From Setoptus koraiensis (lineage: Eukaryota > Animalia > Arthropoda): DNA of 64,000 nucleotides. The notes beneath the pieces were generated by a model. It ran no database searches. It was given only the letters and a program-made list of their open reading frames with translations, and was not told the DNA's origin. The stretch lies in NCBI GenBank assembly GCA_048013815.1, contig CM106586.1:18724001-18788000 (forward strand). The letters run 5' to 3'. Each line of letters begins with the position of its first letter. Position 1 is the first letter of the stretch. Shown in pieces: positions 42,483 through 62,400 of the stretch. Both the position numbers and the translations under genes were made by a program.

Positions 42483-45400
42483 ATGGCGACAGTGTTGGCG
42501 TCTTCAATAATAAGAGAGAGCTCGGATATTGAGAGTTTGCTGTCTCTAAATCCAAAGTCGCGCGGCTATGCAAGTGTTGTGCCCACCGTTCAGACTAAAG
42601 TGGCTAAAAAACATTGGAAAAGAAACCAGGACAAGGGCTCAAGCGTTGTGAAAAAAGAGTTAATTGTAGCAAATTTTGACGATATAAAACATTCGACATT
42701 GAGCGAGCGAGCCGCTCTCAAGGAGGCGTCTAGGTGCCTGAAATGTGCCGATGCACCGTGCTCTAAAAGTTGTCCCACCCAAATAGACGTAAAAGCATTT
42801 ATAAGCATGATATCTAGCAAAAATTACTATGGCGCCGCAAAGATTATTCTCTCAGATAATCCGCTCGGTTTAACCTGTGGAATGGTGTGTCCCACTAGCG
42901 ATTTATGCGTCGGTGGCTGTAATTTGTATGCAAGCGAGGAGGGACCAATCAATATTGGCGGCTTGCAACAATTTGCAGTAGAGATGTTCAAGCTAATGAA
43001 TTTGCCCCAGGTGAGATCGCCTCAGGTGCAGGCTCTGGTGGACGGGGGACCCGAAGAATTGAGACAAGCCTTCGCGGCGCCCATTGCCCTGTTGGGCTGC
43101 GGTCCGGCCAGCATAAGTTGCGCCACTTTTCTGGCGCGACTAGGCTACCAAAACCTGACCATATATGAGAAGAATGCCTTTGGTGGCGGCCTGTCGCTCA
43201 CCGAGATACCCCAGTACCGGTTGCCCTATAATGTGGTGGATTTCGAGATACAATTCATGCAGGATCTGGGCGTTCAAATTAAATACAACAGCCCATTGAG
43301 TGCCAAGTCGCAATTGACAATAGACAATCTGCTCCACAGAGACAAATATGAGGCCGTGTTTGTGGGAGTGGGCAAGCCCCAACCGAAGATAGCCTCGATA
43401 TTTCGCCATCTCACTAAAGAGAACAGATTTTTCACCTCCAAAGAGTTTCTGCCTTTGGTGTCACAAGCGAGCAAGTCAAATTTCGAGCTTCGCACGGCCA
43501 GCTCGGCATGCAGCGCCAGAAAACAAAACGGCGCCGGCTGCTGTAAATCGTCGTCGCCGTCATCGTCGGCAGCAACAGGTTGTTGTTGCGCTGCGATAAA
43601 GGTCAATGTCAATGTGAATCAATTGCCAAAATTGCACGGCCGAGTCATAGTGCTGGGCTGTGGCGACACAGCCTTCGATTGTGCCACCTCGGCCATTAGA
43701 TGCGGCGCCACCAAGGTTTTTGTCTGCTTCCGGCGCGGATTCAGCCACATACGGGCCGTGCCAGAGGAAATGAGTTTGGCCATTGATGAGAAGTGCGAAT
43801 TCATGCCTTTCATGACGCCCAAAGAGGTTATTTTGGCTGGTGACGGCAAAATTGTCGCAATGGACTTTTACAAGACAGAGCTGACGGACGATGCGTCGGA
43901 CAGAGTGATAATTGACGAAAATCAAATTATTAGATTGCGCGTTGACTTTATAATATCGGCCTTCGGGTCGCAATTGGACGATCCCGACATGTTGGCCGCA
44001 CTGAAGCCCATCAAGCTCAACGATGAAACGGGCATTCCCATTATAGACGCGCACACAATGATGAGCTCGCAGCCGGGCGTCTTTTGCGGCGGCGACCTGT
44101 CTGGGCACACCGAGACCACCGTTGAGGCCGTCAACGACGGCAAGACGGCCGCTTGGAATATCCACAAGTATATCCAGGCCAAACGTCAGGTGAGGTTGCC
44201 GCTGGAGGTGGCCAACTTGATGCCGCAATCGTTGCCCATCATGTACACGCCCGTTGACATGATTGACATAAGCGTTGAGGTGTGCGGCATAAAATTTGAG
44301 AATCCATTCGGTCTGGCGAGCGCGCCGCCAACCACTAGCTCGGCAATGATTAGGCGCGCCTTTGAGGCGGGCTGGGGCTTTGCCGTAACGAAAACGTTTG
44401 CCCTAGACAAGGACAATGTCACCAATGTGTCGCCGCGCATTGTGCGCGGCACCACCTCGGGCCACAGCTACGGGCCGGGTCAGGGTAGCTTCTTAAACAT
44501 AGAGCTTATTAGCGAAAAATCCTGCCAATATTGGCTGACCAGCATCAGAGAACTGAAGAAGGTGCACCCGACAAAGGTGCTCATAGCGAGCATTATGTGT
44601 GGCTTCGTGGAACAGGACTGGAAAGAATTGGCCCGGCGGGCCCAAGAGTCGGGCGCCGACGCCCTAGAATTGAATCTGTCGTGTCCGCACGGAATGGGCG
44701 AAAAGGGCATGGGTCTGGCCTGCGGTCAAAAGCCCGAGCTAGTGCAACAGATATGCGCCTGGGTGCGCACTGTCACCACGATACCCTTCTTTGCCAAGCT
44801 TACGCCAAATGTCACCAACATCGACACTATTGCCCGGGCGGCTTATGAGGGCAAAGCCGACGGTGTCACGGCCATCAACACAGTGTCGGGCCTCATGACA
44901 ATAGGCGCCGACGGACGCCCTTGGCCAGCGGTGGGCCACGAGGCCAAAACTACATACGGCGGCGTCTCAGGTAATGCCATTAGACCGCTGGCGCTCAGGG
45001 GTGTTGCCTCGGTGGCCAAGGCACTGCCCGGATTTCCTATTCTGGCTACGGGCGGCATTGATTCGGCCGAGACTGCGCTCCAGTTTATATATGCGGGCGC
45101 CAGTTGTGTTCAAGTGTGCAGCGCTGTCCAAAATCAAGATTTTTCCGTCATTAGCGATTACATTTCCGGTTTGAAGGCGCTATTGTATTTGCGCGCTTCA
45201 AAGCAATCACACAAGTGGCTCGGACAGTCGCTGAGCAAACTGCCCAAACATCAGAAGGGGCACCCTGTGTTGTCGGTAGAGGGCGACCTGCCCTTCTTTG
45301 GTCACTACAAGGAACAGCGTGAATTGTTAATGATGGAGGCTCGCAAGAGACAACTAGATACAACTGAAGCATCGACGCCCGCAAACGATGAACAAAACAT

Positions 45401-45755
45401 TGAGCCCGTGAATACGTTGGTAGAAAATAAGCGCCTCAAGGATTATATTGGCCAGAGCAATAGTCGCATTGGACCTTATAAGGATCTAGACAATCGCCAG
45501 CAAGTGGTGGCAGTGATAGATAACGATATGTGTATCAATTGTGGCAAATGCTACATGACTTGTAACGATTCCGGCTATCAAGCGATCGAGTTCAATTCGC
45601 AGACCCACATACCTAAGGTGAACGACGATCATTGTACTGGTTGCACCTTGTGTGTATCTGTTTGTCCCATAATTGATTGTATTCAAATGGTTGAGAGGAG
45701 TGGGCCTCTGTATGAGCCTAACAGAGTGAAAATTATTGTTGACGACTGCAAATAA
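42483..45755 (+). CDS. DPYD: Dihydropyrimidine dehydrogenase [NADP+], single exon, 1090 aa
   Basis: N-terminal Fe-S motifs [15 protein letters not shown] and [15 protein letters not shown]; FAD and NADPH motifs GCGPAS and [10 protein letters not shown]; FMN-domain motif [13 protein letters not shown]; active-site loop [20 protein letters not shown]; C-terminal 2x[4Fe-4S] motifs [11 protein letters not shown] and [12 protein letters not shown]. Confidence 0.97.
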
Positions 45756-49884: not shown

Positions 49885-50111
49885 TGCAAAGTGGAGATAA
49901 CATCATTTATTAAACTTGAACACACAGATAACATTTGATATATTTATTATTATCTACGTATTCCTTTTGGGATGTATTTGTTTGTTTGTGTGAGTTGATT
50001 TTGGGTAAATCGACTTTTTCTTTTAAACAGGTTCCTAATAATTGTCTTGAACTAAAACTATACAACAACAACAATATTTATAACGAAATTATTAACTAAT
50101 TTACAAATTTA

Positions 50112-50115
<4 letters not shown>

Positions 50116-50186
<71 letters not shown>
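50116..50186. repeat. (CT)n microsatellite in the left arm
   Basis: About 35 CT units; the equivalent right-arm position (~60360-60425) is only a degenerate GA-rich tract. Confidence 0.92.
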
Positions 50187-50188
<2 letters not shown>

Positions 50189-50326
50189 ATCTTCGTCTCA
50201 TTAACTTCGTCTCTATCGTTTCTGTCGCTCTTGCCTACCATTTCCTGTTACTTTCGGTATAATTATATATCATCTATAATCACACTGTATCTATCCATAT
50301 ATCTATCTCCTTATTTACACTGACAG

Positions 50327-50913
50327 TGCTTACCACAAACTTGGTTAGTTTGTGTGGAATTACAATTGATATTGTTGACAGTTCCAATAATTTACTTTCT
50401 GAACAAAAACTATGAATATCAAAAGGGGGAATACAGTTGGAAGACTGCTCCAAGTGTACTATTACTAGGCGCTATACTCATTGGGGCTTGTTACAATTTT
50501 TACAATGTCTACATGAATCAGCTTCCACCTGCTTGGTCTTATAGGATGGCAGATCCAGATGGTAAAGCCATTTATTTTAGCCAACACATGTTTACCATAT
50601 TTCTGTACCAGATGAGGATAGGAAATTCACTTGTCTATCTAGGTTACTTGCGCATCCAATATTTGTTGCATTTGGCAAACTATCATTTTTGGCTTATATC
50701 ATTCATCCTATTGTTCACATGAGCGTTTTGGCCATACAAGAGCAACCAATATTCTCTAGTTGGCTCATGCTATTTCATGTATTTAGTGGAAATATCATAT
50801 TGACTATCGGACTATCGTTGTTAATATCGATATTTGTTGAGATGCCTATTAGAAATTTATTCAGACGAAGCCGCACTTGTATGCTTCTGGGCAGCACCAG
50901 GTACATTCAATGA
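50327..50913 (+). pseudogene. Orphan duplicate of the last exon of the NRF-6/acyltransferase-3 gene, with a net 271-nt frameshifting deletion
   Basis: Inverted copy of 60266-59409 that keeps its tgacag acceptor. It is 587 nt versus 858 nt; the deletion joins ...FSQHMF to the ...VPDEDRKF region near 50592. Upstream exons were not duplicated because the breakpoint lies in intron 3. Confidence 0.85.
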
Positions 50914-52431
50914 GGACCTATTATGCTTCATGTGTGATCTAACTAATGTTCCCTCAGCCAAAGCGGCCAATAAAGATAACTCGCCCGCCAATACAGAGGC
51001 ACAAACAATCCTGGCAAATTTCTCTGCGTTATAGCCCGGCTTATATGGGGGTAGCGATGATCCATTGATTCCCATCATTTTGAGACAATTACTTTGAGCC
51101 TCTAGTATAGTTCCGCCGCCCACCGTACCACATTCAATTGATGGCATCGTACAATGTACTACCAACGAGCCATTTTCGCGATCTTGACTCATGCTAATTA
51201 TACAATTCGAGCTAGTTACATTCTGAGCGGGATCTTGGCCACAAGCAATATATAACGCCGTCACAATATTGGCCGCCTGAGAATTAAATCCACCTATGCT
51301 TCCAGCCAGAGCTGACCCAATCATTACTTTATCCCTCCATAGGTCCACCATTTTCTCAACGGACACCTTCAGTACAGATTGTACTATTTCCTTTGGTAAG
51401 GTTGCTTCGCATTGGACGTCCTTGCCGCGTCCATTTATCCAATTCACTGCAGCCGGCTTTTTATCTGTACAATAGTTACTACTCAAACTAACCACCTCCA
51501 TTGAGGGAAATGCTTTTTTTATCTCTTCTAAGGCTCTTTCTGTTCCTTTAGACAACATATTCATGCCCATTGCGTCACCGGTGGTAGCCATAAATCTTAT
51601 GTACAATAGATGGCCTTGCCGCTTGATTGTATAATCTTCTAATTTGGCATATTTAGATGTCGAATCAAATGCTGTGATTAATTTCTCCTTATTGTGTCTA
51701 TCCTCGAGCCACAGCATGGCCTCTTCGACTTCTTCAAGATTTCGCAGCTTTACACAGGGAGCTCGTGTCATGAAATTTTTCGCACAATGACTCTTGACAC
51801 CGCCGCTTTTGGTTAGTGCAGAAAAGGCACGGTTTGTACTGGCAACCAAACAACCTTCTGTGGTTGCCATTGGAACATATAACTCTTCATTATCCAACAA
51901 TAATGGTCCGGCCACCCCCACTGGTACTTGAACATAACCAATAACATTTTCACAACAGGCACCGACCACCCTGCCATAATCAAAATTGTCCACGGGCAAA
52001 TTTTTTATACCTTCAGCACGATCGTAAGGTAGCTTCTGTGAATAGAATAACCTCCTCACTCTGACGCTTCTGTCTGGATTGCCGATGTATGTCTCCAATT
52101 TGTGGACCGCAATGAGCTTTTGATTGAGAAGTTCTATTAATACGCGATCATCTAGCTGTGATGCATCGAAGCTACCATCTAGGATCTGTTTTTTATAAAA
52201 ATCAATATTACAATTATTTACATTTTGTTGTTGCTGTTGTTGTTGTTGTTGTTGCTGTTGTTGTAGTTGCTGCTGTTGCGATTTACCGCTGCTCTGTGTC
52301 TGAACAGCGGCAGCTAGGTGCTGTTTTGGCGGGTGATTGTTATTAAAATAGAGGTTAGTGTGAAAATCTGACTGATTGACTTGCAACTGGGGAGCTTGAA
52401 CGTGAACTCCATTACCATATTCGGAACACAT
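50857..52431 (-). CDS. HMGCR: HMG-CoA reductase, class I catalytic domain, copy L (524 aa, no membrane domain seen)
   Basis: Motifs ENVIGY, PMATTEGCLVASTNR, TGDAMGMNMLSKG, cis-loop NYCTDKKP, ACGQDPAQN, GTVGGGT and C-terminal HMKHNRS (catalytic His and AMPK-site Ser); uninterrupted ORF. Confidence 0.95.
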   Translation of the reverse strand: MCSEYGNGVHVQAPQLQVNQSDFHTNLYFNNNHPPKQHLAAAVQTQSSGKSQQQQLQQQQQQQQQQQQQNVNNCNIDFYKKQILDGSFDASQLDDRVLIELLNQKLIAVHKLETYIGNPDRSVRVRRLFYSQKLPYDRAEGIKNLPVDNFDYGRVVGACCENVIGYVQVPVGVAGPLLLDNEELYVPMATTEGCLVASTNRAFSALTKSGGVKSHCAKNFMTRAPCVKLRNLEEVEEAMLWLEDRHNKEKLITAFDSTSKYAKLEDYTIKRQGHLLYIRFMATTGDAMGMNMLSKGTERALEEIKKAFPSMEVVSLSSNYCTDKKPAAVNWINGRGKDVQCEATLPKEIVQSVLKVSVEKMVDLWRDKVMIGSALAGSIGGFNSQAANIVTALYIACGQDPAQNVTSSNCIISMSQDRENGSLVVHCTMPSIECGTVGGGTILEAQSNCLKMMGINGSSLPPYKPGYNAEKFARIVCASVLAGELSLLAALAEGTLVRSHMKHNRSSLNVPGAAQKHTSAASSE

Positions 52432-54361
52432 AACAATAGTGGTTTGGGGGGTGGCTGGCTGGCTATAAGTAGTAAATGGTGGTGGTGGTGGTAGTGGTGG
52501 TAGTGGTGGTAGTAATAATAATTAAGATTGCTATTGCTAATTGATTGATCGTTGTTGATTGGGCTAACAGGCTGTTGTCAATGTCGTTGTCTTGGTGATA
52601 GTGATAGACACAATTGCGGTAACAATGCTAATACACAAATAACAATAACGGATATTGATATATTATTACTATTATTATTATTATTATTATTATTATTGGT
52701 AATACTAGAGTCGTCCGTGTTGATGGTGTGACAGTTGTGGATGACTTGATGCAATAATGTTGTTAGGAAGGAAATAAATCACCATATATAGCAACATTAT
52801 CTCTTGCCCTTGCTGTGATCAATCAATTGATGCCTACTGTTGAAGGTACGACGCTGATGCAACGATGATAGTATTTTGATATGAAATGATATGATGTGAT
52901 ATGATGTGATATGATATGATGTATGAATATTAAGATGATAATGATATTATGACTCGAGACGTTGTATGACTTTTGCAAGAAGACGACGAAGAAGAAAAAG
53001 AATAAGTCGTTGTTCTGTAGGGCAATCACGATTTGTCGGCGTTCTTCAGCGACCATATAATGTTGTGGTCTGTAAAGGGCACATAGAGTCTTAGAGTGTG
53101 TGTGTAGCGTATATCGTGGTGGTGCGAATATCCTCACCGAGTTGTTAAAAGATCTGTATTAATCAAATGGTGTGTTACTCAATGTTTTTTGTATATGCGA
53201 AAATATTTGTTGGCCTGGTGATGGGTGTTTTTGTGCATTAATTTAATCAGGTGTATGTGTGCATGACATATGATATGCGTTATGTTGGTAGACGATGATG
53301 ATAGGCGATTTTAGTTTTGATGTTGATGTGAAAGTCTTTATGGTTCAAGAGTATACGGCCAAAGAGTACAGTAGTGCTAGTGTCTAGTATTGGCCCGACG
53401 ATGTCTGACGTTACGTTAAAAGACGGCGATCTTTATCTCATCATCATTCATTTATTTAATTTTCCTTTCCTTTCCCTTCTTGTCCCTCTGTTGTGTTCTG
53501 TTGTGCTCTCTTCTTCTTCTTTTCTATGTTATTCTATTGCTGACTATTGCCTATTGCACTGTCTTGGTGTGAGCTGAAACGAAGCAACGAACAGAAAGAA
53601 TTAGGTCAACGAAACTAAATAGAGTGGGCATCATCATCATCATGACGCTGATGCCAAGCAACAGGTTGCAACAACAACAATAACGGGCTCATGATGTAGG
53701 CTGATAGATAAAGCTGAAGACTCTTCAGCTTTATCCATCAGCGCCGCCAAGCCGCCGACAGCAGCGTCTTCGTCGTCGTCCTATCAATGAGTTAGCAGCC
53801 TCAGCTAATCAACATTTATGCTATATCATGCTGACGCTTACCTGACTGGTGGCCGACTGAGCTTTTTGCGAGATACAGTCAAGCATCGCAATATCAGCTC
53901 AGCGGCACATTGTTGAGCTGTCTGGCATAATTCTCATTGATGATAGCGTCAGCAGAATCACTTTTTGTCGGTTTGGCCAATTTCGTCGTCTGGCGATTTC
54001 TCTCTCTCGCTCTCCCGTCTGTTTTATTCATCAACTGCGCTCATTCGCCTACCTTCCCACAACTTCAACCTGATGCCATTAGATTTGTAGTACTGCAACT
54101 TTTGTTGGTGGTTGTGTCCACTCTGACAGGACAACTTGTCGTTTGCTGGTTGTGTTGGTGCCGCTGATTACGCCGACTCGCCCAGTCCGGCTGACCACTG
54201 CTGTCAACCGCCAGAGCAGGGCCTTTTTGTTTTCAGCCATTTTTACTCGTGAGTGGCAATGGCATTAACTGTGCATTGTCAACAGTGAAACTGTTATGCC
54301 TAACCAATCACAGTTAATTTTGCAGTTAATGCCATTGCCACTCACTAGTAAAAATGGCTGA

Positions 54362-54394
<33 letters not shown>

Positions 54395-56229
54395 AAAGCC
54401 TCTGCTCTGGCGGTTGACAGCAGCGTAATCAGCGGCGCCAAGACAAGAAGCAACGACGAGTTGTCCTGTCAGAGTGGACACAACCACCAACAAAAGTTGC
54501 AGCACTACAAATCTAACGGCATCAGGTTGAAGTTGTGGGAAGGTAGGCGAATGAGCGCAGTTGATGAATAAAATAAGCGTTCGCAAGAACTCGCAAAGAA
54601 TGCTGGACGTAGCTTGATAAATAGGAGATAGAGAGGGGAGACAGAGGGCGAGGGGAGAGGGAGAGGGAGAGAGACCGGGAGACAGAGAGACAGAGAGCGA
54701 GGGGAGAGGGAGAGAGAGAGACATAGAGAAATAAAATAATTTGAAAGGGCCCGAATTTCTATCTCGTCTCTATTTTTTATTTTATAAAATAAAAAATTAG
54801 CGTAACTTTGCTTAACACTTGTTTACTTTTCGTCACTGACTCCCATCTCCCATGGCACACGCCCCCTCCCTCCCGTGTCCCCACAAAAGCCGTGACTCCC
54901 TTGGAAGTCACTTCCGTGACACGAAGAAAATAAATTTATTCTTCTTTTTTCGCAAGGGGAAAACTCTATGGGATTTTTACACGTAAAGGGGGGATCGCGC
55001 CTTTTTCACTGTGTCTACCACAAAGGCCCAGAGACATTGGCAGACATTTACGCACGGCACACTCACACGATTTGTGCGCTCGCGCACCGAGAAAGAGGGG
55101 AAAGCCGAATAGAATTTTAACACACAAAAGGGGGACACGTTCTTTTACTGTATTCATCCCTAAGGTAATATCCCGACCCAACAGATAGGAGAGAGAGAGA
55201 GCGAGAAATCGCCAGACGACGACAAAAAGTGATTCTGCTGACGTTACGTTGTATCATCAATGAGAATTATGCCAGACAGCTCGGCCGGCTAGCATTTAGG
55301 TAAGCATTCAGTGAGCATGATAGCATAAATGTTGTTGATTAGCTGAGGCTGCTAACTCATTGATAATACGACGACCAAGATGCTGCTGTCGGCCGCTGAT
55401 GGATAAAGCCGCTGAAGCTTTATCTATCAGCAGCCTACATCATGAGCCCGTTATTGTTGGTGCAACCTGTTGCTTGGCGTCAGCGTCATGACGACGACGA
55501 TGCCCACTCTATTTAGTTTCGTTGACCTAATTCTTTCTGTTCGTTGTTCGTTTGGTGGCAACTCTGTGCCAGTTACCGCCACAATCACACTCACAGCTGT
55601 GTTGGCTTGTCAGCTGTTGTGCCTGGAAAGAAGCTGGCCCGTTGTAAAGAAGCGCACGCTAATCAGTTGGGCACAGTTGAGGCATCGTAAGTAGACTTAC
55701 GCGCGTCTTACAGTTGTGCGCCGCATACAGTTGGTCACTGACGCTGGCAAGCTAGCCAGTCATTTGGCTAGCCAGCCATTCGGCTGGGCAGCCATTGAGC
55801 CCGGTTTCACTCAACGGCGTTGAGTGAGTTGCCGCCAGAGTACATGTAATGTAATGGCGTTGAGTACATCACACTCGCTCACAGTCGGTGCTGGGGGCAG
55901 ACGGCTCGTTCATTGGGCAGGCACATGCGCACCGATGGGCGGCTGTCCGCTGCCCCTGTGCAGCGCACGGGCATGCCCCGCCGCCCATAGGCGGCGAACT
56001 GCTGGGCAGTCGCTGCCCATGCAGCCGCCCCTGCCCCCAGCATTATTTACTGAGTGAGTGCATGCTGAGAGATAGAGCATTTCTCACAAGTCAGATAGAG
56101 CCGTCGTCGACGTCGTTCCTCACAAAACTGGATTGTTACCCTTTCTCTGTTAATTTTCGTCTTGTCGTCGCTACTACTGCTATTGCATCATCAACAATTT
56201 GTTTGCCATCAATTTGCGGTTACTAAATA

Positions 56230-56438
56230 CAGGGTGAGTCAAATTCAACTGGCTAACTTTGGAATGGAATATCTCAAGAACTAGACGCCAAGGGGCGTTC
56301 AAATTGTGTTCACTATGGAAGGGGATCGAAGGTATTGGTTGACCTCGGTTTCGTAATGGAAGAAAATGAGCGCGCTCTGGCGTCTAGTTCTCGAGATATT
56401 CCAATTCAAAGTTGGCCAGTTTAATTTGACTCACTCTG
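56230..56438. mobile_element. 209-bp MITE, Tc1/mariner type
   Basis: Imperfect ~61-bp terminal inverted repeats (cagggtgagtcaaattcaactggctaactttgg... versus reverse complement cagagtgagtcaaattaaactggccaactttga...). TA dinucleotides flank both ends (56228-29, 56439-40). No coding capacity. Confidence 0.85.
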
Positions 56439-57202
56439 TATTTGTTGTATACGCTCACTATTATATTTATAATAATATTAATAATAATAATATCAGCTAT
56501 ATATACATTTGGAGTATTGTGATTGTATTCAACGGCAACTATAAATATTCCTGTATGTGTGTGTCTGTTTGTCTGTCTGTCTGTCTGTGTCCGTGTGTGT
56601 GTGCGTGTACGACTGCCTGGCTGTGAGCGAGTGAGCGATCGAGCGTGTGAGTGTGTGTGTCTTGGATCACATAAATACATAAATCATATTATTCGCGATA
56701 ATATTATCACTGATAACTTATTGATAGTGATATTATTAATATAATATTAATAATACACAATAAATACTGGAGATAACTGGCAATAGCAACAGTGGCAATA
56801 ATATGATATAAGAAGGACGTTATTAGCACATGGATTTTTTAGCGCACACCAAGACAGTGCAATAGGGAACAGTCAGCAATAGAATAACATAGGAAAGAAG
56901 AAGGAGATAGCACAACAGAGAAAAAAGGAAAAGGAAGGAAAATTAAATAAATGAATGATGATGAGATAAAGATCGCCGTCTTTTAACATAACGTCAGACA
57001 CCGTCGGGCCAATTCTAGACGCACCACTGTACTCTTGAACCATAAAGACTTTCACATCAACATCAAATCTCAAATCGCATATCATATGTCCTGCACACAT
57101 ACAACTGATTAAATTAATGCACAAAAACACCCGGCCAACAAATATTTTCACTCAACATTGAGCAGCACACCATTTGGTTAATACAGATCTTTTAGCAACT
57201 CG

Positions 57203-57270
57203 GTGAGGATATTTGCACAACCACGATATACGCTACACACACACTCTGAGACTCTATGTGCCCTTTACAG
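57203..57270 (+). other. Probable 68-nt GT-AG intron in the HMGCR 5' leader, conserved in both palindrome arms
   Basis: ctcg|gtgagg ... ctct(g/a)ag ... gccctttacag| is preserved in the right arm (+) and the left arm (-, ~53070-53137). Confidence 0.45.
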
Positions 57271-57890
57271 ACCACAACATTATATGGTCGCTGAAGAACG
57301 CCGACAAATCGTGATCGCCCTACAGAACAGCGAAATATTCTTCTTCGTCTTTTTGCAACAGTCTTACAAAGTCTCGAGTCCTACTATCATTATGGCATCA
57401 TTATTATCTTAGAATATTCATACATCATATCATATCGCATCATATCATTTCATATCAAAATACTATCATCGTTGCATCAGCGTCGTACCTTCAACAGTAG
57501 GCATCAATTGATTGATCACAGCAAGGGCAAGAGATAATGTTGCTATATATGGTGATTTATTTCCTTCCTAACAACATTATTGCATCAAGTCATCCACAAC
57601 TGTCACACCATCAACACGGACGACTCTAGTATTACCAATAATAATAATAATAATAATAATAGTAATAATATATCAATATCCGTTATTGTTATTTGTGTAT
57701 TAGCATTGTTACCGCAATTGTGTCTATCACTATCACCAAGACAACGACATTGACAACAGCCTATTAGCCCAATCAACAACGATCAATCAATTAGCAATAG
57801 CAATCTTAATTATTATTACTACCACCACCACCACCACCACCACCATTTACTACTTATAGCCAGCCAGCCACCCCCCAAACCACTATTGTT

Positions 57891-59465
57891 ATGTGTTCCG
57901 AATATGGTAATGGAGTTCACGTTCAAGCTCCCCAGTTGCAAGTCAATCAGTCAGATTTTCACACTAACCTCTATTTTAATAACAATCACCCGCCAAAACA
58001 GCACCTAGCTGCCGCTGTTCAGACACAGAGCAGCGGTAAATCGCAACAGCAGCAACTACAACAACAGCAACAACAACAACAACAACAGCAACAACAAAAT
58101 GTAAATAATTGTAATATTGATTTTTATAAAAAACAGATCCTAGATGGTAGCTTCGATGCATCACAGCTAGATGATCGCGTATTAATAGAACTTCTCAATC
58201 AAAAGCTCATTGCGGTCCACAAATTGGAGACATACATCGGCAATCCAGACAGAAGCGTCAGAGTGAGGAGGTTATTCTATTCACAGAAGCTACCTTACGA
58301 TCGTGCCGAAGGTATAAAAAATTTGCCCGTGGACAATTTTGATTATGGCAGGGTGGTCGGTGCCTGTTGTGAAAATGTTATTGGTTATGTTCAAGTACCA
58401 GTGGGGGTGGCCGGACCATTATTGTTGGATAATGAAGAGTTATATGTTCCAATGGCAACCACAGAAGGTTGTTTGGTTGCCAGTACAAACCGTGCCTTTT
58501 CTGCACTAACCAAAAGTGGCGGTGTCAAGAGTCATTGTGCGCAAAATACGATGACACGAGCTCCCTGTGTGAGCTTGCGAAATCTCGATGAACTCAAAGA
58601 GGTCATGCAGTGGCTCAAGGATACACACAATAAGGAAAAATTAACCACAGCATTTAATTCGACATCTAATTATGCTAAATTAGAAGATTATACAATCAAG
58701 CGGCAAGGCCATCTATTGTACATAAGATTTAGTGCTATCACTGGCGACGCAATGGGTATGAATATGTTGTCTAAAGGAGCAGAGAGAGCCTTAGATGAGA
58801 TAAAAAAGGCATTTCCCTCAATGGAGGTGGTTAGTTTGAGTAGTAACTATTGTACAGATAAAAAGCCGGCTGCAGTGAATTGGATAAATGGACGTGGCAA
58901 GGACGTCCAATGCGAAGCAACCTTACCAAAGGAAATAGTACAATCTGTACTGAAGGTGTCCGTTGAGGAAATGGTGGATCTATGGAGTAGTAAAGTAATG
59001 ATTGGGTCAGCTCTGGCTGGAAGCATAGGTGGATTTAATTCTCAGGCGGCCAATATTGTGACGGCGTTATATATTGCTTGTGGCCAAGATCCCGCTCAGA
59101 ATGTAACTAGCTCGAATTGTATAATTAGCATGAAACAAGATCGCGAAAATGGCTCGTTGATAGTATATTGTACGATGCCATCAATTGAATGTGGTACGGT
59201 GGGCGGCGGAACTATACTAGAGGCTCAAAGTAATTGTCTCAAAATGATGGGAATCAATGGATCATCGCTATCCCCATATAAGCCAGGCTATAACGCAGAG
59301 AAATTTGCCAGGATTGTTTGTGCCTCTGTATTGGCGGGCGAGTTATCTTTATTGGCCGCTTTGGCTGAGGGAACATTAGTTAGATCACACATGAAGCATA
59401 ATAGGTCCTCATTGAATGTACCTGGTGCTGCCCAGAAGCATACAAGTGCGGCTTCGTCTGAATAA
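57891..59465 (+). CDS. HMGCR: HMG-CoA reductase, class I catalytic domain, copy R (524 aa, no membrane domain seen)
   Basis: Same catalytic motifs as copy L; 24 amino-acid differences from copy L by manual comparison. Confidence 0.95.
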   Translation: MCSEYGNGVHVQAPQLQVNQSDFHTNLYFNNNHPPKQHLAAAVQTQSSGKSQQQQLQQQQQQQQQQQQQNVNNCNIDFYKKQILDGSFDASQLDDRVLIELLNQKLIAVHKLETYIGNPDRSVRVRRLFYSQKLPYDRAEGIKNLPVDNFDYGRVVGACCENVIGYVQVPVGVAGPLLLDNEELYVPMATTEGCLVASTNRAFSALTKSGGVKSHCAQNTMTRAPCVSLRNLDELKEVMQWLKDTHNKEKLTTAFNSTSNYAKLEDYTIKRQGHLLYIRFSAITGDAMGMNMLSKGAERALDEIKKAFPSMEVVSLSSNYCTDKKPAAVNWINGRGKDVQCEATLPKEIVQSVLKVSVEEMVDLWSSKVMIGSALAGSIGGFNSQAANIVTALYIACGQDPAQNVTSSNCIISMKQDRENGSLIVYCTMPSIECGTVGGGTILEAQSNCLKMMGINGSSLSPYKPGYNAEKFARIVCASVLAGELSLLAALAEGTLVRSHMKHNRSSLNVPGAAQKHTSAASSE

Positions 59466-62400
59466 ATTTCTAATAGGCATCTCAACAAATATCGATATTA
59501 ACAACGATAGTCCGATAGTCAATATGATATTTCCACTAAATACATGAAATAGCATGAGCCAACTAGAGAATATTGGTTGCTCTTGTATGGCCAAAACGCT
59601 CATGTGAACAATAGGATGAATGATATAAGCCAAAAATGATAGTTTGCCAAATGCAACAAATATTGGATGCGCAAGTAACCTAGATAGACAAGTGAATTTC
59701 CTATCCTCATCTGGTACAGAAATGTGGTATAAGAACCAAGTTAAACTTAATGACCACAATATCCTAGAACTGGCATTATAAATACCGGCTATTGTTGGCG
59801 ATGGTAGATCACCTGTCGACCAATCATGTGTTGAAAATATAATCACCAACATTACACAACAGGCCGTTATACCTGCGATAAAGTCCAACATGATTCGACC
59901 ACAATTGCCACTATTCGATGAGAACTTTCTCGTCCTAATCCTGCACTTATGACCAGCTATTACACCAATTGCAAAAACTGATATATGTGTCCATGTCTTG
60001 AACATATGTTGGCTGAAATAAATGGCTTTACTATCTGGATCTGCCATCGTATAAAACCAAGCAGGTGGAAGCTGATTCATGTAGACATTGTAAAAATTGT
60101 AACAAGCCCCAATAAGTATAGCACCTAGTAATAGTACACTTGGAGCAGTCTTCCAACTGTATTCCCCCTTTTGATATTCATAGTTTTTGTTTAGGAAGTA
60201 AATTATTGGAACTGTCAACAATATCAATTGTAATTCCACACAAACTAACCAAGTTTGTGGTAAGCACTGTCAATGTAAATAGGGAGATAGATATATGGAT
60301 AGATACAGTGTGATTATAGATGATAAATAATTATACCGAAAGTAGCAGGAAATGGTAGGCAAAGAGACAGAGACGACGGGATACGATAAAGACAGAGTTG
60401 AGGAGAAGAAGATGTAGAGAGGGATACATAAATTTGTAAATAAGTAGATAATTTCGTTATAAATAATGTTGTTGTTATATAGTTTTAGTTCATGACAATT
60501 ATTAGGAACCTGTTTAAAAGAAAAGTCGATTTACCCAAAATCAACTCACACAAACAAACAAATACATCCCAAAAGGAATACTTAGATAATAATAAATATA
60601 AAAGAATGTATTATATCACCGTTCATGTATCACACACTCGAATCGCTTCGAATTCTTTCAGATTTTCCATGAAGTCACTTGTAGTTCCTCGAGCTCTGTT
60701 TAGATTAGAGCAATCGCTACACTTACCATTTTTCCATAGGGCAAAAGGTTTTGTATGAAGAAGGCATTGATCCAGCCGTTCTGTTGACACACTTCCGATT
60801 GGCTTACAACGTAATCATTCCAAACGGGGCCCTTGTAGGCCAGTGGCAATAAAATGACAAGAGCCGTCACAACCATTACAGAGGGCATTAAACGGGCGTA
60901 TTTGTCGACAGTGTATTTGACTAATGTCTTCATATTTGAGTCGATATTTTGATAGGCCAGCGTGAAGGCCGTCAGTAATATGAGTGAGTCATATTGTAGA
61001 GTACTATTGATGATGAACTCCACTGGCCACCAATTAATGAGATCCTTTAATAACATCAATTCGCGTAAATATTCAAATTTGAGATTAACAGTTGATTCAA
61101 CAATGATGAACCACATGACGAATAGAAATTTCAATCCGTATAAAGCTAATGGTTTCTGATCGGACAATTGTTCATAATCTACTTTCGTGTGACACTCTAT
61201 AGATCGTCGCAACGACAACGATTTCAATATAGATTTAATTGCATGCGGCTTCTCCGTTTCCTGCAGTAACGAAATGGTCAGCACAGAGGCCAACAAAACT
61301 ATCGTGACCAGAACAATAGGTAATAGAGCCCAACCAATTTGAAATATGTCATACCGTCTGTCCATGGCATCTATCTCTTGTTCGCATCTTAACACTTTGA
61401 TTTTGAGATCAATTCTTTCTGATAGGTAACTGGCCGCCTTTTGAATGTCCTGGGGTGGACACAACGAGGGCACACAAACATCGAATCTGATATTGACATA
61501 GTTGAAGGCCAGCGCCAATTCGGACATCTCGTCGGAAATTGTTTTCTCGTACCATTCATTCTCCGATCCGCTCATTAAGGCCGCCAGTTTGGTGTTGAAA
61601 TTGTAGAAACGTTGTTTCTCCGGCAGCCATGGTTTCACTTGAAGCACACAATATTGTCCCCGGAAATACTCACTAAATTCGCCTGTAAACTCAATTTCGT
61701 CATCATCGGGCGCTCTAACTTTGAGACACTGGCGATAATTGCCAAACATGGTCATGGAGCCCTCTAGAATTCCCGCGCCAGGCTTGCCGGAGGCGTCCAA
61801 CACTGGAGGTAGAGATAATTTAATTGAGACAGTTATTTCAATCAACTTCAACTAACGAGTTAGCTATCGATTGTGGTCAACTTTTTGCAAGTCGGATTGA
61901 TAGTGGCAGTGATGAGTGGATGACTTACTTCGTAGCGACCAGCTCTTCAATTGATTCATGCCCAGGATCCACTTGAGTAGCGCACCCGAACAGTTACTAC
62001 TAATTTTGGCCTCTCTAGATAGATTCAGTGCCAGTGGTACAATGCTGCCTATTGCACTTTGGATACCTAAAACAAGAATAGTTATGCAACAAATAAACAC
62101 GACAATGTTGAGGTTACATACAGTTTAAGTATATTCTGGCCACTCAGATGCCACTTACCCTTTTTCATTCTTTTCTCCATTTTACTCCAAATTTCAATAA
62201 CTTCCTCTTCTGGCTTGAACGAGGAATATACTTCATTTATTTTAGTCATGTTGATTGAATTGTAGTCGAAGGCAGGCACCGATTTCACTGGTTCTATTTG
62301 GGGCTCTGCACGATCACTAACACTTGGCACGGTGGTGGTATCAGATGGGTCGGTCTGCTGATCAGATGCAGCCGATGTGTCGATACGCCGGGGCAGCAAA

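Follow-up and report, generated by a model that had tools for sequence, protein, structure and literature searches.

Arm-to-arm gene conversion keeps gene-bearing inverted arms similar in large palindromes, for instance on the human Y chromosome. Where selection acts against conversion, its signature is a peak of divergence above the neutral background, as seen in exon 5 of the red and green opsins and in the model of Teshima and Innan (PMC3924837). Islands of divergence amid conversion reportedly also occur between the GOT1 paralogues of Tigriopus copepods (PMC3728101).

The pair of 3-hydroxy-3-methylglutaryl-CoA reductase (HMGCR) genes considered here is a fresh example of this known evolutionary pattern. 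As in the Y-chromosome palindromes, gene-bearing inverted arms are kept similar by intrachromosomal conversion, although the present palindrome is far smaller, background divergence between its arms is much higher (5%), and conversion between them is patchy. Like the opsin exon and the modelled peak, the HMGCR pair has homogenised flanks and a sharply bounded coding peak above the neighbouring neutral DNA. Unlike the opsin case, dN/dS is no higher in the peak than beside it, and the HMGCR island is known from sequence alone, with no trans-specific sign of age or maintenance. With the copepod genes, the pair shares a duplicated arthropod metabolic enzyme, mosaic conversion, and persisting islands. 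Sampling there extended across populations and species, whereas the present comparison covers one genome, one outgroup, and contigs of two samples.

The window, that is, the whole 64-kb stretch of DNA that was analysed, contains the palindrome and one HMGCR copy on each of its arms, termed left (L) and right (R):

49931-60637, no strand assigned: inverted duplication (palindrome) with a unique spacer, from the arm alignment
57891-59465, plus strand: R copy, predicted soluble class I HMG-CoA reductase, intact 524-codon open reading frame (Pfam PF00368, E = 1.6e-132)
50857-52431, minus strand: L copy, predicted soluble class I HMG-CoA reductase, intact 524-codon open reading frame (Pfam PF00368, E = 9.6e-134)

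Both copies are predicted to be class I HMG-CoA reductases. Their scores against PF00368 (HMG-CoA_red) are 442.5 and 446.5 bits, against a curated cut-off of 27, and they match the catalytic portion of human HMGCR (1DQ8) over residues 89-511 (E = 6e-139). Class I chains, human and other eukaryotic, are matched at E = 1e-125 to 1e-139, while chains from 3qae onward, which we take to be class II, are matched at about 1e-6 or more weakly. The N/L/S domain layout of the human enzyme (PDB 1DQ8/1DQA) is retained. So are its catalytic residues, present in both copies as E192, K324, D400, and H500 (Glu559, Lys691, Asp767, and His866 by the 1DQ8 alignment), together with the motifs ENVIG at 161 and DAMGMN at 286 and the AMPK-site serine. 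Unlike the human enzyme, the copies have no membrane or sterol-sensing region: neither PF12349 nor PF02460 has a match in either 524-codon reading frame, and a poly-Q leader of about 90 residues replaces that region in both. Named full-length animal relatives mostly have PF12349 / PF02460. The gene also differs from the human one in being intronless and in occurring as two inverted copies. It is not mentioned in papers on eriophyoid mite genomes.

The arms of the palindrome are about 4 kb long, and the spacer between them is about 3-5 kb. Open reading frames in the neighbourhood are long and intronless. The outer flanks, within one contiguous window, are unlike each other, with a PH/START gene on the left and an NRF-6-like gene on the right; DPYD (42483-45755) is a further neighbour. 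Protein relatives at 64-69% identity are all environmental, and mites and other chelicerates are among the named matches. In combination, the neighbours, the long intronless frames, and these matches suggest a small arthropod with few introns, perhaps an eriophyoid mite. Within the unique spacer lies a smaller inverted repeat, whose halves of 122 bases (54022-54143 and 54452-54573) are 98% complementary. Two features on the right bear on the history of the arms:

59409-60239, minus strand: last coding exon of the NRF-6-like gene, 276 codons, 97% identical to the outgroup protein, dN/dS 0.04
59730-60000, no strand assigned: 271-base segment present on the R arm only, missing from the L arm

The exon overlaps the stop region of HMGCR on the opposite strand, and the NRF domain lies upstream of it (60700-61851, minus strand). 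It is intact on the R arm only. On the L arm, the absence of the 271 bases leaves a broken copy (relic at about 50231-50592), and the junction that skips these bases is also seen in contigs of the runs X1 and X4. Because the NRF-6-like exon is conserved on R and is broken by the 271-base deletion on L, R lies in the original setting and L arose as its duplicate. The R copy is, moreover, syntenic with the outgroup locus.

That outgroup is the one close relative found by the protein search (P0001, 81% identical). Its gene lies on contig L001, 7 kb long, where HMGCR precedes the NRF-6-like gene just as on the right arm and the DNA is 84% identical. It was seen in one run only, whereas the sequence of the window occurs at a share of at least 0.4 in nine runs. 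The outgroup's run also holds a DPYD that is 90% identical to that of the window. Its restriction to one run, the DNA identity, the conserved gene order, and the accompanying DPYD together lead us to regard L001 as the orthologue in a related species. The contig crosses the whole gene unbroken, no second close HMGCR copy was found in the outgroup, and this species appears to have a single copy. Since, in addition, dS between R and L is 0.21 in the most diverged part of the gene as against about 1.1 to the outgroup, the duplication is placed after the species split.

Divergence between the two species is itself uneven along the gene. At four-fold degenerate sites it amounts to 26% in codons 1-208 (57891-58514) and 10% in codons 466-524 (59286-59465), versus 44-47% in codons 209-465 (compared with L001:1505-3073). 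The first 50 residues show no change between the species. This pattern suggests that both ends of the gene may carry extra constraint; the low-divergence 3' end overlaps the NRF-6-like exon.

A codon-by-codon comparison of R with L gives 45 base differences, distributed over 24 replacement codons and 15 codons with silent changes only. Codons 1-217 differ by just two silent changes (codons 139 and 209), and their poly-Q tract is identical, while codons 218-302 hold 17 of the replacements and nine of the silent-only codons. Under a uniform null, the clustering is extreme both for bases (30 of the 45 differences in 255 of 1572 bases, p = 5e-14) and for replacements (17 of 24 in 85 of 524 codons, p = 4e-9). 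Along the arms, this resolves into a mosaic:

57450-58516, plus strand: recently homogenised tract of 1067 bases, R arm, with 3 mismatches, spanning codons 1-208 and 441 non-coding bases before them (L equivalent 51806-52884)
58517-58810, plus strand: divergence island, R copy, 32 of 294 bases differ (10.9%)
51512-51805, minus strand: divergence island, L copy, mapped by the arm alignment
58811-59290, plus strand: intermediate stretch, 12 of 480 bases differ (2.5%), dN/dS 0.63
59291-59729, plus strand: second homogenised tract, 0-1 mismatch in 439 bases, covering the 3' end of HMGCR and 264 bases past its stop (L equivalent 50593-51031)

The initial annotation, made from the sequence of the window, had placed the diverged interval at 58542-58810, to which the island as delimited here adds one silent site (58517). 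Its difference counts and its claim of an identical poly-Q tract are reproduced exactly by the codon comparison, save that about ten silent-only codons had been reported where there are nine, and the left-arm equivalent that it gave (51512-51780) agrees with the map from the arm alignment. It had also equated the interval with the S-domain, the small domain that binds NADPH. The human S-domain spans residues 591/592-682 (PMC7503714). With human numbering equal to query numbering plus 367 in the 1DQ8 alignment, codons 218-302 correspond to human residues 585-669, so that the island starts about seven residues before the domain and stops about 13 residues short of its end. The overlap is good but inexact.

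The same annotation attributed the near-identity of the remaining sequence to gene conversion between the arms, and this is well supported. The upstream non-coding portion of the 5' tract has two differences in 441 bases, compared with 49 in 977 (5.0%), along with 14 indel events, in the clean non-coding arm. Purifying selection is excluded as the cause of the identity because the identity spans non-coding DNA as well as a fast-mutating CAA/CAG repeat. A Sawyer-type permutation test of condensed fragments, on 241 variable sites of the three-sequence alignment, identifies the 5' fragment at p = 0.0003. Arm-to-arm gene conversion homogenises the 5' part of the gene and its 3' end. Two apparent peaks of non-coding divergence (57350-57450 and 60350-60450) were set aside, as they reflect microsatellite length differences and not old substitutions. 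The repeats concerned, an (ATCAT)n-like array and a (GA)n microsatellite, differ in length from arm to arm (57380-57440, 60360-60440, and the L equivalents), the L arm having by far the longer GA run.

Both forms of the island were recovered from two further public runs at about equal depth (141 versus 134 in X4; 3.6 versus 5.9 in X7). The R-type contig has zero differences from the R copy of the window, and the difference count of the other contig fits L. Assembly error is excluded for the island because both forms recur in these contigs. The island sequences of X4 and X7 are identical to each other and possibly come from one strain, and contigs of this kind collapse isolated variants. An RNA run (X18) labelled with the same organism as X7 yielded zero reads and probably derives from another organism, perhaps the host, so that it carries no information on the expression of R or L.

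The history that we propose, and that we rate at slightly better than even, combines mosaic conversion with an R copy that is relaxed or diverging. The starting gene, a soluble class I HMGCR without introns, would have undergone a lineage-specific inverted duplication, after which arm-to-arm conversion would have overwritten the pair patchily, with tracts of roughly 0.4-1 kb resetting different parts at different times. Recent tracts would have reset two parts, one being the 3' end and the other the proximal promoter together with codons 1-208. The S-domain stretch would be the oldest piece, so far uncovered by any tract. In the parts of R that escaped overwriting, amino-acid change relative to silent change would have proceeded about six times faster than between species, mostly at positions that are variable in the family. 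Replacements would thereby accumulate in the S-domain through the longest time and the lower constraint there. On this history, the changes in R were probably driven by relaxation and not by adaptation, and the escape of the island may be due to chance, or to its own divergence now hindering pairing.

The pattern of substitution is consistent with such a history. The island is not only changed but also old, with a dS of 0.21 and far more difference at four-fold degenerate sites (20%) than codons 307-465 (2.8%). Between R and L, dN/dS reaches 0.53 within the island and 0.63 across codons 303-465, whereas to the outgroup it is 0.08-0.17. In a codon likelihood model with three taxa, the R and L branches have an omega of 0.65 and the outgroup branch one of 0.09 (likelihood ratio test, p = 4.5e-6); with one outgroup and saturated silent sites (dS about 1.1), this model cannot separate the omega of R from that of L, or from a longer R branch. 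An omega of 1 is not rejected in the model, and dN/dS above 1 was not seen. Within codons 218-524, replacements split 17:7, island to downstream, between R and L, versus 15:15 between species (p = 0.17). Because dN/dS is equally high downstream and because these two splits are alike, the concentration of replacements in the S-domain can be read as the age of the island, without domain-specific selection. The S-domain is apparently one of the faster-evolving parts of the enzyme, and, on the sequences compared, the pile-up of replacements within it is not evidence of selection targeted at the NADPH site.

Change has also been markedly one-sided. When polarised by the outgroup, 17 replacements fall on R and two on L, with five ambiguous. 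Non-synonymous base changes are R-derived in 23 cases versus L-derived in three (p = 9e-5), the corresponding silent counts being six versus seven. All seven replacements of the intermediate stretch are R-derived, and the L copy keeps the ancestral residue at most differing sites. Parsimony puts the omega of the R branch at about 1, with conserved sites still avoided; positive selection at variable sites of R could be masked by this avoidance. Sites with R-derived changes have a mean family entropy of 1.77, versus 1.07 for all sites (119 other HMGCRs, p = 0.001), and resemble those at which the two species differ (p = 0.15). Indels are absent from both coding sequences, where the non-coding ratio predicts about six. 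Both reading frames are thus under selection, and R is no pseudogene.

The locus is a small, clean case of an animal metabolic gene under mosaic concerted evolution, in which tract age, direction of change, and selective regime can be seen together. For now, it mainly illustrates that replacements between paralogues subject to conversion can cluster in the shape of a domain when tracts differ in age and one copy is relaxed, with no need for the functions to have diverged.

The main competing explanation, which we consider rather unlikely, is that the island is maintained by selection. R would have gained some other property of the NADPH-binding domain (cofactor affinity or preference, regulation, or stability), and haplotypes in which conversion erased the island would have been removed. 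This was the view of the initial annotation, which held that conversion spares the domain, as would be expected of functionally diverged enzymes. The part of that claim concerning an elevated peak stands: at four-fold degenerate sites the island differs at six of 30 positions (20%), compared with 5% for clean non-coding DNA of the arms (p = 0.004). The expected excess of replacement over background was likewise borne out, dN/dS on the R-L path being about 0.6 compared with 0.09 between species, and the rise over the species background being put at five-fold. The strong one-sidedness of the replacements, the changes at the equivalents of human Arg595 and Arg627, the recovery of both types at equal depth in two further samples, and the theory and precedents cited above (PMC3924837 and PMC3728101) can all be counted in favour.

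The functional part of the claim fares less well. Values of dN/dS are as high outside the island as within it and are never significantly above 1. A divergence of the two enzymes from each other is not what is observed, as change lies overwhelmingly on R. The height of the peak falls within chance expectation, since neutral mosaics of 8-13 segments reach a maximum of at least four times the mean with P = 0.14-0.21, and the extra samples, which share identical island sequences, may represent one strain. The residues involved point the same way. All listed NADPH contacts (PMC7503714) are identical in both copies save the Arg627 equivalent, the HMG and catalytic contacts are identical without exception, and 16 of the 17 island replacements lie away from the listed NADPH contacts. 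The exception, residue 260, reads N in the R copy and K in the L copy; since the only known copy of the outgroup has T there and the relative P0010 has S, this position is not conserved among these soluble HMGCRs.

Three R-derived changes do affect well-conserved positions (residues 228, 235, and 415), and residue 228, equivalent to human Arg595, is R or K in 110 of 119 relatives and S in the R copy. A more specific version of the selective account, which we hold to be more doubtful again, is that R has adaptively remodelled the surface of its NADPH domain and the 2'-phosphate region, by putting Ser in place of the Arg595 equivalent and Asn in place of that of Arg627 and by reversing several charges along the first helix of the S-domain, with selection purging the conversions that would erase them. 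Were this so, the animal would run two soluble HMGCRs that differ in cofactor handling or regulation from a shared, homogenised promoter. An island protected by selection would also provide a natural variant of the NADPH-binding domain in a major drug-target enzyme family, and a test case for the peak of divergence beyond the opsins.

It is improbable that the R island was instead imported by conversion, as a tract of about 290 bases, with an introgressed haplotype or a more distant third HMGCR elsewhere in the genome as its donor. The size would be typical of conversion, the likelihood model makes the island branch four times longer on R than on L, and loose-end contigs in X4 and X7 reveal a further HMGCR resembling another relative, P0009. 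The residues specific to R are, however, unlike those of the outgroup, P0009, P0010, and the family consensus, the R state having a frequency of 0-0.03 at most sites. Silent differences in the island are divided evenly between the branches by parsimony (three versus four), and R-derived replacements carry on downstream of the island. There is no third HMGCR copy within the 64-kb window, and no close third protein in the database search. Two candidate donors, the P0009/P0010 type and the canonical HMGCR of membranes, were rejected because neither has the R-specific states.

The loose-end contigs themselves match conserved HMGCR motifs only (59068-59122 and 58743-58777) and continue into a P0009-like enzyme (ELHIRFEAQT..., ...LILEKDSKG). 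Because they encode such an enzyme, these samples must also contain a further soluble HMGCR, a distant one (about 52% identical) that may belong to the same genome or to another organism of the sample.

Least credible of all is that the island types are alleles or the palindrome a mis-assembly: alleles would fit the equal depth as well as paralogues do, and the evidence consists of contigs, but the palindrome lies in a single contiguous window with unlike outer flanks and a unique spacer, its arms are separated by the 271-base indel, microsatellite lengths, and 5% substitutions, and the two types and the 271-base junction were found again in independent runs.

Downstream of the island, one X4 contig carries L-type letters throughout the interval 58809-59723, and conversion of R in that sample was considered as its source. 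This was dropped, since the depth of the contig (233) is nearer to that expected for collapsed single-variant bubbles (about 246) than for true homogenisation (about 275). Within the same interval, the R letters at 59271 (T) and 59285 (A), in codons 461 and 465, occur in no contig of X1, X4, or X7, where L-type letters are found throughout. Polymorphism, a further small conversion, or the collapsing of contigs could account for this.

A second outgroup contig, L003, carries DPYD and aligns with the window in that gene only. It was dropped as an informant on the palindrome in the outgroup, as no flank is common to L003 and the window. The genes downstream of DPYD on L003 are UCR_hinge and UCH, and those of the window are the PH/START gene and then the palindrome. 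Since these downstream genes differ, gene order has changed between the species beside the palindrome.
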